A stretch of 64,000 nucleotides of DNA from Salpingoeca rosetta (Eukaryota > Protista > Choanoflagellata): assembly GCA_033442325.1 (NCBI GenBank), contig JAWQFM010000026.1, forward strand, positions 105,339 through 169,338. The letters are read 5' to 3'. Every line of letters begins with the position of its first letter. Within the stretch, counting starts at the first letter, position 1. A model generated the notes under the pieces. It was not told where the DNA came from, made no database searches, and saw only the letters and a list, made by a program, of their open reading frames with translations. Of the stretch, positions 37,144-64,000 are shown in pieces. The position numbers and the translations under genes are program-made.

Positions 37144-40100
37144 ATGTCGTCTGACGACTCGCCAATCGACGTGGCTGCGCTCTCGCGAAAGGCAGAGCAG
37201 ATTATCCGCGAGCTGGCAGAAGGCCAGGAGACGTTCGACTTCACAGAGGAGGTTGCCGAGTATGAGAACACAATCTCCTCGCAACGCAAGCAGCTTGACA
37301 CCTTGTACCATTGGCTCGCCGAACACGCACCCGACGGCTCATGGAAGGAGGTGCGTTGTGTGTGTGTGTGTGTGTGCGTGTGTGTGTGTGTGTGTGTGTG
37401 TGTGTGTGTGTGTGTGTGTGTGTGTGTGTGTGTGTGTGCGCGTGCGTGTGTGTGTGTGCGCGCGCGTGTGTGTGTTGTGCATGCTCGCGTCACTTTCCCT
37501 CCCCTTTCCCCATTTCCATGCACCCAACTGTTGACATCCTCTGCATCCCATTCACTTCTCTCTTCCTCCTCTCACATGCTCCGCAATGCTGCAATGCGCC
37601 CCTCTCCCTCCTTCGCCCACTTCCCCTTTCCTCCTCTTCACGATGTCACGTGCAGGGCCTCGATGCAGAGTCGCTCAGTAACATTGGTCAGTCATCCATT
37701 TGCGAATGCACAACACCCTCTCTCGTGTCGTCGCTCCTGCATGAGGCTCCCACTGTACTACGACCCCTGCCACTCGGTTTCATACGCACACACACACACA
37801 CACACACACACACACACACACACGCACGCACACACACACACACACNNNNNNNNNNNNNNNNNNNNNNNNNNNNNNNNNNNNNNNNNNNNNNNNNNNNNNN
37901 NNNNNNNNNNNNNNNNNNNNNNNNNNNNNNNNNNNNNNNNNNNNNCATGTGTGCGTAGCGGTTGTGGAAGGCCTGCACGGGCGCATCGCGGAGCTGCGGA
38001 GAAAGCTGAGGGCCCGCCAACGCCGCCAACAAGGAGCAGCAGGACGACATTGCGCATCTGAAGCAGCAGCTGGAAGCAGCAGAGCAGGCCGCCGCCGCCG
38101 CCAAGAAGGAGGCCGAGGTGCTCCGGGCAGAGTCGCTCAAGCAGGAAGAGGCGGCAGCAGCGGCGGCAGCAGCGACCAACGGCGACACCAAGCGCCTCGC
38201 AGCCGAACTCGCCGCCGTCAGGGACGAGCTGCACCACAGCAAAGAGATGCGGACGAAAGAGCGCGAGGCATTTGAACAGCGTCGAAGCGAGCTGGAGGAG
38301 GAAATGAGGGAGAGCAAGGAAACACACCAGGCAGCCGTGGCGGCGCACAAGGAACGCGTTGCCACGCTGCAAGCCATGGTGGACGAGCAGCAGGCGGCTG
38401 CTGCAACCGCTCAGCGCACACACGACAGTGACGTGGCCTCACTCAACAGCACCATCGCGCAGCTCAATCAACGGCTCAATACAGCGGCGGAGGAGGCTGA
38501 GAAGGACGCAGCGGCGAGCGCGGAGAAGCAGCGCAAGACGCAAGGTGCGCTTGAGGAGACGCAGAAAGCGCTTGAGGAGGCGCGGAAGGGCGCTGATACG
38601 GCAAGGCGGGAGCTTGAGGAGGCGAAGCAGGCGCATGCCGGGGAGGTGAAGCGGCTTGAGGGCGCTGTTGCTGAGGCAGCGCGGGAGGAGGAAGCGCTGC
38701 GGGCGCAGCAGAAGAAGCTGCAGGAGCTGCGGGAGGAAGACAAGCGAGCCATGGACGAGGCACTTGCGGAGAGCAAGGCGACGCACGGCAAGGTGCAGGG
38801 CGAGCTGAAGGACCGCATTGCCGAGCTCGAGCGCCTTGTCGGGGAGGCGCGTACGCGGGAGACGCAGGTGCGTGAGGAGCTTGATGCGCAGCTGCGGAGC
38901 GTGCGCGTTGAGCTTGAGAAGCAGCAGGAGGCGGCTGCGGCGAGCGACCAGAGCGCGGAGGTTGCGCGGCTGAAGAAGCTGTGCGGGGAGAAGATGCGCG
39001 AGGTTGGCGAGCTGCAGGAGGCGCTTGATGCGAGTGCGAGCGCGCGCAGTGAGCTTGAGGGCGAGTTGCGGCGAGCACAGGACGGACAGCGGGAGGCTGA
39101 GAAGGACGCAGCGGCGAGCGCGGAGAAGCAGCGCAAGACGCAAGGTGCGCTTGAGGAGACGCAGAAAGCTCTTGAGGACGCGCGGACGGAGCTTCGGCTT
39201 CGGGAGGCCTCGCTGACGCAGCTTGAGCAGAGCCTGGGCGAGCGTGAGGCGGAGCTGAGTGCGAGCGAGGCGGCACTTGGTGCGGCGCGCGATGAGGCGT
39301 CCAAGGCGGCAGCGGAGGCGAGCAGCGCTGGGGAGCGAGCGCGTGCTGCTGAGGCGTCTGCACGGGAGCTTGAGGAGCGCGTTGCTGAGGCAGCGCGTGA
39401 GCTTGAGGTGAACCGTGCGGCGTGCGCGAAGCAGAAGGAACTGCGTGAGCAGACGCGGGAGATGACGAGCGCTGAGTGCGAGCGAGCGACGTACGAGACC
39501 GTGAAGACCGAGCAGGCGAAGCGATTGCGGAGCTCGAGCGCCTTGTCGGGGAGGCGCGTACGCGGGAGACGCAGGTGCGTGAGGAGCTTGATGCGCAGCT
39601 GCGGAGCGTGCGCGTTGAGCTTGAGAAGCAGCAGGAGGCGGCTGCGGCGAGCGACCAGAGCGCGGAGGTCGCGCGGCTGAAGAAGCTGTGCGGGGAGAAG
39701 ATGCGCGAGGTTGGCGAGCTGCAGGAGGCGCTTGATGCGAGTGCGAGCGCGCGCAGTGAGCTTGAGGGCGAGTTGCGGCGAGCACAGGACGGACAGCGGG
39801 AGGCTGAGAAGGACGCAGCGGCGAGCGCGGAGAAGCAGCGCAAGACGCAAGGTGCGCTTGAGAGCCTGCAGAAGGAGCACGAGCGCGCGCGGACGGAGCT
39901 TCGGCTTCGGGAGGCCTCGCTGACGCAGCTTGAGCAGAGCCTGGGCGAGCGTGAGGCGGAGCTGAGTGCGAGCGAGGCGGCACTTGGTGCGGCGCGCGAT
40001 GAGGCGTCCAAGGCGGCAGCGGAGGCGAGCAGCGCTGGGGAGCGAGCGCGTGCTGCTGAGGCGTCTGCACGGGAGCTTGAGGAGCGCGTTGCTGAGGCAG

Positions 40101-61157: not shown

Positions 61158-64000
61158 CTAATTGTCGTAGTTGAACAGCAGCATGTCCTCCTCATCGCTC
61201 ACATCAGCGTCACCACCACGATTGTTGTTGTGCTGCAGTTCACGGCTCATCGTGCCGCCTCGACGACCATGAGTGCCATCAGTGTCGGTGACAGGGCCTG
61301 GTGTTGACGTATCAGTGTCAGCAACAGCATCATCAAAGTTTGGCGCGGGAGGTGGGAGCGAGCGGTGAGCATCATCATCAGCATCGCCTGTAGTTTGGGA
61401 GGCGCGTGGTGATGAGGCAGTGTTCGCCCTCAGCTGCTTGATGTGGGAGCGTGTGTGCTGCACGTCATCGTGGTGCTTCTTGCTGAACTTGAAGGCGGGC
61501 GTGTCTTCGAGGCTGGCGTCCTGGTAGTGGTAGCGGTGCTTCTCCACGTACTCCCGAATAAACTCGTCAAGCGACACCCAGCCCCCGCCAACACGCACCA
61601 TGAAGTTGTTGCCGCGCTGCGCCACATTCACCACCTTGAAGTCGTTTCCATACAGGAACCGGTACTTGCCCCGGCCAAGGAACGACACGTGCTCGTCCCC
61701 AAGCCCGTGCTTCTGCAGCACGTCAGACACCGCCCTGTGCACCGCGTCCTTCGACGCCTTGACAAACGCGCTGCTCAGCCGCCGCGATGGCGTCTCCGGG
61801 CGTGGGGACCGCGCCACCCTGGACGACGACGACGATGTCGACGACGCCCGCCGCTGCAACCGCTCCCGCAGCGCGTCAAGTTCCTTCTGCAGCCGCGCAA
61901 TCTCCTCCCTCGCCTCCGCAAGCAGCGCACGCGTCTGCTCCAACTCCGCCGTCAGCGCCGCCACCTGCTCGGCTGCGGGCCGCATGTCCTCCAACTCCTG
62001 GTGTGCGGCCGCAACCTCCTCCTCCGCCCGCGCCGCGCGTGCCATCGCCTCCTGCAGGTCTGTGCGCAGCTGTGCGGCTGCTGCAGCCTCTTCCTCCACC
62101 GCTGCCGCCCACTCCCGCCGTTGCTGCTCCACCTGTGCCTCCAGGGCAAGGGCCTTGGCCTCAAGCTCGGCAACCTGCTGCGACAGGCGCCGGTTCTCTG
62201 CCTGGGCAGCGGCAGCGCGCGCGTTGCCTTCGTCCTGCTTGCTCTCCTCGCACGCCCTCAGCGCACGTGTCAGCTCATCAACACGTGCTTGAAGGCGCGC
62301 AATCTCATCAGCACTGGATGCGGCTTCAGACTCCAGCCGCGTAAGGTTGGCCTTGTCTGTCTCACTGACGGCACGAAGGGCTGCCAGCTGCTGCTCAAGG
62401 TCCTGTGCTTTGCTTGCAAGCTCGGATTCACGGTGCTTGCTGTCATCGCTGGTGGCGTCGAGGCGTCGCTCGAGCTCCGCAATGCGGTCCTTCAGCTCGC
62501 CCTGCACCTTGCCGTGCGTCGCCTTGCTCTCCGCAAGTGCCTCGTCCATGGCTCGCTTGTCTTCCTCCCGCAGCTCCTGCAGCTTCTTCTGCTGCGCCCG
62601 CAGCGCTTCCTCCTCCCGCGCTGCCTCAGCAACAGCGCCCTCAAGCCGCTTCACCTCCCCGGCATGCGCCTGCTTCGCCTCCTCAAGCTCCCGCCTTGCA
62701 GCATCAGCGCCCTTCCGCGCGTCCTCAAGAGCTTTCTGCGTCTCCTCAAGCGCACCTTGCGTCTTGCGCTGCTTCTCCGCGCTCGCCGCTGCGTCCTTCT
62801 CAGCCTCCTCCGCCGCTGCATTGAGCCGTTGATTGAGCTGCGCGATGGTGCTGATGAGTGAGGCCACGTCACTGTCATGCGTGCGCTGAGTGGCGGCAGC
62901 GGCTGCTTGGTGCTCGTCCACCATGGCTTGTAGCGTGGCAACGCGTTCCTTGTGCGCCGCCACGGCTACCTGGTGTGTTTCCTTGCTCTCCCTCATTTCC
63001 TCCTCCAGCTCGCTTCGACGCTGTTCAAATGCCTCGCGCTCTTTCGTCCGCATCTCTTTGCTGTGGTGCAGCTCGTCCCTGACGGCGGCGAGTTCGGCTG
63101 CGAGGCGCTTGGTGTCGCCGTTGGTCGCTGCTGCCGCTGCTGCTGCCGCCTCTTCCTGCTTGAGCGACTCTGCCCGGAGCACCTCGGCCTCCTTCTTGGC
63201 GGCGGCGGCGGCCTGCTCTGCTGCTTCCAGCTGCTGCTTCAGATGCGCAATGTCGTCCTGCTGCTCCTTGTTGGCGGCGTTGGCGGCCCTCAGCTTTCTC
63301 CGCAGCTCCGCGATGCGCCCGTGCAGGCCTTCCACAACCGCTACGCACACATGTGGAACACAGGGGGGGGGGAGGCGAACAAAGGGTGAGCCACATGGAG
63401 TGTGTGCGTGCGTGCGTGTGCGTGCGTGCGTGCGTGCGTGTGTGTGTGTGTGTGTGTGTGTGTGTGCGTGTGTGTGTGTGTGTGTGTGTGTGTGTGCGTG
63501 TGTGTGTGTGTGTGTGTGCGTATGAAACCGAGTGGCAGGGGTCGTAGTACAGTGGAAGCCCCATGCAGGAGCGACGACACGAGAGAGGGTGTTGTGCATT
63601 CGCAAATGGATGACTGACCAATGTTACTGAGCGACTCTGCATCGAGGCCCTGCACGTGACATCGTGAAGAGGACAAGAGAAGGGGAGTGGGCGAAGGAGG
63701 GAGAGGGGCGCATTGCAGCGGTGCGGAGCATGTGAGAGGAGGAAGAGAGAAGTGAATGGGATGCAGAGGATGTCAACAGTTGGGTGCATGGAAATGGGGA
63801 AAGGGGAGGGGGACAGGGAGGGAGGGAGGGAGGGAGAGTGACGTGAGCATGCACAACACACACACACACACCCTCGCACACACACACACACACACGCACG
63901 CACACACACACGCGCGCGCGCACACACACGCACACACACACAAGCACAGCGCACCTCCTTCCATGAGCCGTCGGGTGCGTGTTCGGCGAGCCAATGGTAC
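61158..64000 (-). CDS. Coiled-coil + GAS2/GAR-domain protein, short paralog (about 800 aa; 5' end beyond window)
   Basis: Exons >64000-63955, 63649-63619 and 63340-61158. The reading frame is intact and near-identical to the 37144-44729 gene minus the array. Same GAR motif, plus a unique ~100-aa C-terminal tail. Confidence 0.88.
61459..64000 (-). repeat. Inverted segmental duplicate of 37305-38830 plus 43370-44716, introns included
   Basis: The reverse complement matches exon and intron sequence (e.g. gcatccca ttcacttctc tcttcctcct ctcacatgct ccgca). Identity ends just after ...AAGCACCACGATGA.GTGCA. Confidence 0.95.

Follow-up and report, generated by a model that had tools for sequence, protein, structure and literature searches.

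Two convergent paralogous genes predicted to encode GAR-tipped rods of unequal length in the choanoflagellate Salpingoeca rosetta

The 64,000-nucleotide (nt) stretch of Salpingoeca rosetta DNA analyzed here (the window) contains two genes that face each other and share a nearly identical core, each ending in a GAR domain; one of them, the long copy, carries an additional tandem array within its rod, and the other is the short copy. GAR domains bind microtubules and usually occur together with a CH domain, as in the GAS2 family, or in spectraplakins. In the spectraplakins and GAS2 proteins of animals they serve as the microtubule arm, and no living group is closer to animals than the choanoflagellates. 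The account we favor as a whole, with somewhat better than even confidence, is that the two convergent genes are paralogs encoding GAR-tipped rods, that their core has been homogenized by gene conversion, that the array is peculiar to the long copy, and that the products would serve as dimeric microtubule tethers.

Results

Two loci and a transcribed long copy

The short copy, on the minus strand, corresponds to an annotated gene on scaffold GL832978.1 of S. rosetta assembly GCA_000188695.1: the translation of its exon 3 is 100% identical to the hypothetical protein PTSG_08552 (875 amino acids [aa]), which is named "GAR domain-containing protein" in UniProt and of which a literature search found no mention. 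For the long copy, on the plus strand, no second S. rosetta protein was present among homologues of 400-1531 aa, so any annotated model of it lies outside that length range or is absent. The genes are convergent, with 16.4 kb between their stops (44727-29 on the plus strand and 61158-60 on the minus strand). A base-by-base comparison found the inverted arms 37305-38833/62467-64000 (introns included) and 43371-44716/61459-62808 to be 96-100% complementary, the same range being seen in the individual arms of 823, 791, 420, 214, 147, and 134 nt. The original prediction of near-identical facing genes with common introns therefore held, and its claim of common N-terminal exons held for exon 2, which is identical, and for the last 96 nt of exon 1 (37258-37353 by the blastn boundary), but not for the rest of exon 1, which differs. 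Because the two arms overlap on the short copy at 62467-62808, the short copy amounts to the long copy minus everything between two 342-nt direct repeats, which the short gene has as a single merged copy at that place. The long copy exceeds the short by 4,879 nt as assembled, or ~1,628 aa in 714-nt units once indels are corrected, in agreement with the ~1,630 extra residues of tandem coiled coil that had been proposed; likewise, the unique tail of ~100 aa ascribed to the short copy is present as 100 aa beyond the homology break (61161-61460).

Reads were consulted through Logan contigs of four runs (X4, X9, X11, and X18) aligned to 42600-46400; such contigs blend paralog alleles and omit minority variants. 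Runs X4 and X9 contain a contig joining 46213 to 46460 across a GT..AG intron and are therefore RNA, and X11 and X18, in which it is missing, are DNA runs. In the DNA contigs of X11 and X18 the GAR region runs from 44716 into the tail of the short copy, and the two runs taken together contain both allele sets at 44501-44676. The RNA contigs include the array unit, the joint from one unit to the next, and the junction leading into the array (as a loose end behind 43712), and an X9 RNA contig covering 44418-44768 shows no differences from the long copy, bears its alleles, and continues 52 nt past the homology break. Long-copy alleles are the only ones in the RNA contigs of these two runs. Both loci exist, and the long copy is transcribed: its transcript, whose lack the original prediction had listed as a refutation, is represented in RNA by the units, the array-entry junction, and the copy's own 3' end.

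That the pair is an assembly artefact, with one locus or two haplotypes placed twice, is scarcely credible. The draft 454/Sanger assembly does have gaps and a repeat beyond its resolution, but the two copies lie on a single scaffold with different flanks on either side, each 3' junction and each allele set recurs in independent runs, and the depth of the common contig in X11 lies between one and two copies (30.3 versus 17-21). A single misassembled locus, one of the outcomes that the original prediction had named as refuting it, is thus not borne out.

The GAR domain and the rod

In both copies the C-terminal domain exceeds the gathering score of Pfam PF02187 (GAS2), scoring 38.1 and 34.3 bits where 21.3 is required (E-values of 1.4e-9 and 2.2e-8). 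The GAR domain of MACF1 is the best PDB sequence match (5ve9 and 5x57, E 5e-6), and with a profile built from eight relatives the match reaches 2e-13 over nearly the whole domain. An AlphaFold2 model of the region (predicted local distance difference test score [pLDDT] 83-93) consists of a helix H22-33, five strands within 41-79, and a helix H80-94, and the top four Foldseek matches to it are the four solved GAR structures 1v5r, 5x57, 5ve9, and 9kbw, at a probability of 1.00 and an E-value of only 0.01-0.04. The nearest ESM Atlas clusters are all GAS2-bearing. On its sequence and predicted fold this is a true GAR domain, and the assignment of a C-terminal GAS2/GAR domain to both copies is upheld by the Pfam profile, the PDB sequence match, and the predicted fold alike.

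A Pfam search yielded no CH domain in either copy at E-values up to 1 and no match to spectrin repeat, plakin, or EF-hand, in line with the earlier view that no complete CH, spectrin repeat, or EF-hand is present. The array unit has a hydrophobic periodicity of 3.5 residues (z = 11) in a constant register over ~150 residues and contains no proline; in the short-copy rod, heptad registers hold only locally. Modeled with AlphaFold2 from a single sequence, the unit is all-helical, with helices of 81, 120, and 110 residues and short breaks lying 124 and 114 residues apart. Since the predicted helix is broken every 114-124 residues, a rigid straight rod is not assured; in this model the unit is not spectrin-like and may be hinged. 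The proposed coiled-coil "spectraplakin analogue" in two lengths is thus partly supported, namely in its heptad-periodic helical rods and their very different lengths.

The N-terminal head gave only sub-threshold coiled-coil-like Pfam matches (Tup_N, E 0.004) and generic helical neighbors in the ESM Atlas. The private ends of the short copy, its N-terminal extension and its 100-aa acidic tail, matched no family or motif, and a tblastn search of the DNA downstream of the long copy found no remnant of the short-copy tail. The N-terminal extension (L001 10001-10230) includes a basic PRRKR cluster.

History of the pair

DNA identity between the copies has abrupt limits: it sets in within exon 1, at 37258, and breaks off at 44716, leaving 10 nt to the stop of the long copy; outside these boundaries the flanks do not align with each other, and upstream the two proteins align weakly but in register. 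Over the 718 codons compared, the core has 17 synonymous and 12 nonsynonymous differences and no stops. The differences are patchy, 10 of the 19 in the 5' rod falling within 34 nt, beside 791 nt at 100% identity. An uncultured relative, represented by six metagenome contigs in ENA (P0002/P0010, L002-L007), shows 64% identity in its GAR region and has a single gene of ~575 aa with three exons, as in the S. rosetta pair, and no array; its exon 2 is also 31 nt long (1242-1272 of L002) and in the same phase. The head of the relative is closer to the long copy than to the short (56% versus 43% identity); over 63 aa of exon 1, relative and long copy agree at 56% of positions. In both, the stop directly follows the HH motif. 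A prokaryote-style gene call on the relative's contig had caught only the last exon (P0002).

The simplest account of these comparisons would be an old paralog pair whose core (37258-44716) has been kept nearly identical by gene conversion while the ends diverged. The long copy would have kept the ancestral N- and C-terminal ends, PTSG_08552 would have gained its N-terminal extension and 100-aa acidic tail, and the long copy would later have amplified the 714-nt unit into a very young array, probably larger than assembled. We consider it improbable that the near-identity stems instead from a recent partial segmental duplication, which could account for the sharp boundaries, the low synonymous divergence of the core (dS roughly 0.03), and the single gene in the metagenomic relative. 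Against a recent duplication, both boundaries interrupt coding sequence without closing either frame, the part of the short copy that precedes the boundary can still be aligned, in register, with both the long copy and the relative, and the differences within the core are patchy, as described above.

The tandem array and its size

Successive unit starts in the array are spaced 707, 715, 714, 717, 714, and 712 nt apart. Units 3 and 5 are identical, each 714 nt and clean in frame, and the array, whose units are 99-100% identical, is very young to judge by its sequence. The unit was present in 20 runs from eight studies of the same organism. Its word depth in the DNA runs was 333 versus 30.3 for the adjoining common contig in X11 and 994 versus 97.6 in X18, at similar G+C content, that is, 10-11 times the adjoining contig in both; correction for the single-copy part of the common contigs gives ~17-19 units versus six assembled, with the caveat that word depth is not copy number and that other loci or strain differences could contribute. 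These depths suggest that the reference array is collapsed and that the true number of units is ~17-19, in which case the real long-copy protein could be near 5,000 aa. The length of ~320 nm put forward for the long rod is accordingly not supported, since it derives from an array that contains sequence errors and probably lacks units in the assembly. The fraction of words present in each run (0.74) was tried as an error rate and dropped: its value was identical across runs, which fits words that recur in each unit being missing from the index, and it carries no error information.

Frame breaks in the reference

The assembled long copy cannot be read in a single continuous frame. It contains ~15 unpaired 1-nt indels (at 38013; seven within 39452-39523; and at 40118, 41182, ~41294, 41376, 42615, 42774, and 44297), and its unit 6 differs by 29 substitutions and two deletions, with a TAG in frame at 42815-17. 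Taken as assembled, 44297 would shift the GAR domain out of frame; every run covering the site has a T behind 44296, the frameshifted form is in none, and the frame is restored. The unit-6 TAG is removed by TT>GG at 42816-7 in all four runs. Over 42600-42774 the four runs provide no contig, the loose end there being canonical unit. The breaks that were tested against reads thus look like 454/Sanger assembly errors, which is consistent with the construction of the S. rosetta assembly from ~400-nt 454 reads and Sanger reads (PMC4054682).

The unit-6 changes (42600-42820) are without support in any public run examined and resemble low-quality reads built into the reference. A GGA indel at 44154 was considered as a marker tying the restored T to the long copy and was rejected as strong evidence, since the GGA of the short copy is in no aligned contig of any run. 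This codon (62023-62025) and three further letters private to the short copy (62478, 62721, and 62730) are all missing from the aligned contigs and are either dropped minority variants or small errors in the short copy.

Could the long copy instead be decaying or non-functional, either transcribed but truly frame-broken or carrying an array of neutral junk without a function in length? The ~15 breaks in its assembly, the near-identity of units in an array that is very young and probably unstable, and the lack of an array in the outgroup relative would all suit such a gene, yet we find it quite improbable: every break that reads could check was an error, units 3 and 5 are clean, the unit is exactly 34 heptads, and the long copy, which appears to keep the ancestral ends, supplies the only alleles in the RNA contigs. 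The long gene is incorrectly represented in the reference, with frame breaks and probably too few units, and this sequence would mislead proteomic or transcript analyses that use it.

Discussion

The closest published parallel in layout that we compared is Trypanosoma brucei SNAP1 (Tb927.9.7090), a protein of the rootlet microtubule quartet close to the basal body, with coiled coils and a C-terminal GAR-like domain (PMC10656233). By that published description, SNAP1 is a protein of a flagellate protist that resembles the S. rosetta pair in having no CH domain, coiled coils, a GAR-type domain at the very C-terminus, and largely missing zinc ligands; it differs in that its GAR is far more degenerate, with four of five basic residues lost, and in that it has neither a tandem array nor a paralog partner. 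The GAS2 and GAS2L1-3 proteins share with S. rosetta a GAR with a conserved MVRVGGGW hairpin, and GAS2 acts as a dimer presenting two GARs (PMC12084551). Whereas that family combines CH and GAR, the S. rosetta copies lack CH and so have no predicted actin arm, and they also lack the zinc tetrad and an SxIP motif in the tail; their dimerization would come from the long rod, that of GAS2 from a short C-terminal segment. Spectraplakins (MACF1/ACF7, dystonin, Shot) similarly join a long rod to a C-terminal GAR, but with CH, plakin domain, spectrin repeats, and EF-hands that are absent from S. rosetta, and with a rod of ~106-aa three-helix repeats rather than the predicted heptad helices of 110-120 residues.

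Outside animals GAS2 domains are reported to be usually paired with CH (PMC9145010). A GAR without CH is nevertheless not unprecedented, as it occurs in S. infusionum (EF-hand, coiled coil, and GAR; P0003), in Hartaetosiga (twelve PDZ domains and GAR), in a sanchytrid (GAR-only proteins), and in Basidiomycota (KAR9 and GAS2; an ESM Atlas cluster). The S. infusionum protein is 30% identical to the S. rosetta protein over ~400 aa, and both have an SKKHH motif after the GAR; it and the Basidiomycota proteins have other N-terminal modules (EF-hands and KAR9, respectively), and no 238-aa array or inverted pair is known from them. The layout is thus a variant of an already known CH-less GAR architecture. 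Across the choanoflagellate EukProt transcriptomes represented by P0003, P0005, and P0007, the partners of GAR vary (EF-hands with coiled coil, CH, and twelve PDZ domains). In P0003 and P0005 the GAR region contains no cysteine, and in P0007 it has one near the position of the MACF1 C-K-C and one C-terminally.

Microtubule binding by the S. rosetta GAR is plausible. The residues of GAS2 that contact microtubules are K237, R242, R252, G254-256, W257, K266, and H267, and mutation of R252, GGG, or W257 cuts binding 4- to 70-fold (PMC12084551); the equivalents of K237, R252, GGG, and W257 are kept in S. rosetta. In the mechanism that we propose, the rods would pair as parallel coiled-coil dimers and so bring two GAR domains to one end, the GAR pair would attach to the microtubule lattice by its conserved R-V-G-G-G-W hairpin, and the head at the opposite end of the rod would dock on a partner, with the two genes giving tethers of very different reach under separate promoters.

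Several observations weigh against this picture. A canonical GAR has a C-C-D-C zinc tetrad (PMC10656233, PMC12084551), and this tetrad, said to hold the fold together, is absent, there being no cysteine in residues 668-776 of the short-copy protein (P0001): the C-K-C of MACF1 aligns to H-G-L, and the C-terminal D-P-C is without a counterpart. The equivalent of R242 is alanine, and K266 and H267 have no aligned equivalents; a K-H pair occurs four residues later. Moreover, the GAR of SNAP1 neither binds microtubules in vitro nor is needed for localization (PMC10656233). On the 42600-46400 stretch the two RNA runs gave no RNA specific to the short copy. The check with reads covered a minority of the breaks, those at 38013, at the end of unit 1, and at 40118, 41182, 41294, 41376, and 42615 being outside it, and the T at 44296 is tied to the long copy only indirectly because Logan contigs mix alleles and drop minority variants. 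Finally, the dimeric state, the parallel orientation, the straightness of the rod, and a partner for the head are all things that we infer.

The GAR-related points among these raise the alternative that the domain is a degenerate protein-protein module that does not bind microtubules and reaches its site through other partners, as with SNAP1 or GAS2L3. The missing zinc ligands, the lost R242 equivalent, and the unaligned helix-2 contacts would fit such a module, for which T. brucei SNAP1 and the interaction of GAS2L3 with the chromosomal passenger complex (CPC) are precedents (PMC10656233). We rate it as unlikely, if still a serious contender, since the S. rosetta GAR passes the Pfam GAS2 gathering score, which the SNAP1 GAR does not, has its fold predicted at high confidence, and keeps K-Y-R-F and the beta-3 lysine as well as R252, GGG, and W257, the group whose mutation is so costly to GAS2.

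A more specific extension of the tether reading, which we advance as very doubtful, is that the paralogs and the number of 238-aa units set the reach of a dimeric microtubule tether, i.e., a tunable spacer of ~75 nm in one form and 320-700 nm in the other, which would link cortical or rootlet microtubules to a partner bound by the conserved head. Were this so, length would evolve by gain and loss of repeats while gene conversion kept both ends compatible. The possible spacer or ruler role in a basal-body, rootlet, or cortical array that the original prediction suggested is conjectural as well. If length does matter for function, the pair would be a tractable case, S. rosetta being editable and imageable. 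Apart from length, the predicted proteins place a GAR on a plain coiled-coil rod with neither an actin arm nor a zinc site, and so would let nature itself test how far microtubule binding depends on the zinc site, and the locus combines apparent concerted evolution of the inverted paralogs with an in-frame coiled-coil array of very recent origin.

Features of the window and neighboring genes

Coordinates of the two genes and their parts are collected in Table 1. The assembly gap in intron 2 of the long copy is separated by 13 nt from the acceptor of exon 3 (37959); the intron stretch containing it measures 165 nt including the 100 N, versus 170 nt in the intact short copy, and exon 2 joins exon 3 in frame whatever the content of the gap.

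Table 1. Positions of gene parts and repeats within the window
Feature	Coordinates	Strand	Basis or remark
Long copy, exon 1 (70 codons)	37144..37353	+	Start ATG and GT donor present in the sequence
Long copy, exon 2 (31 nt)	37656..37686	+	AG/GT borders; identical exon in short copy at 63649-63619
Assembly gap of 100 N in (CA)n tract of intron 2	37846..37945	.	No coding sequence touched
Long copy, exon 3: rod, tandem array, linker, and GAR; TAG stop at 44727-29	37959..44729	+	Frame map
Left bracketing direct repeat (342 nt)	38492..38833	+	99% identical to 43371-43712
Tandem array, seven unit starts	38816..43806	+	Canonical unit 714 nt = 238 aa = 34 heptads
Right bracketing direct repeat	43371..43712	+	Arm overlap
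Long copy, predicted GAR fold (Pfam core 44481-44624)	44394..44648	+	Pfam GAS2, E 1.4e-9; coordinates mapped from short-copy model
Short copy, 100-aa acidic tail specific to it, and stop	61158..61460	-	Homology break; DNA contigs
Short copy (PTSG_08552), exon 3, uninterrupted open frame	61158..63340	-	Translation; database match
Short copy, predicted GAR fold (P0001 residues 669-753; Pfam core 698-745)	61527..61781	-	Pfam, PDB sequence, predicted fold
Short copy, exon 2	63619..63649	-	Counterpart of 37656-37686
Short copy, exon 1, last 45 nt	63956..64000	-	Remainder past the window, L001 10001-10368

Introns 1 and 2 of both copies contain long (GT)n/(CA)n tracts (37357-37475, 37784-37845, 63400-63535, and 63828-63948), which account for most of the intron differences between the copies and for the assembly gap. 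Upstream of the long copy, an intronless open reading frame of 692 aa occupies 34073-36151; the assembly collection has no called gene with exactly this product. A plus-strand neighbor gene (45096-46460) lies downstream of the long copy, and its spliced RNA contig has a depth far above that of the GAR gene.

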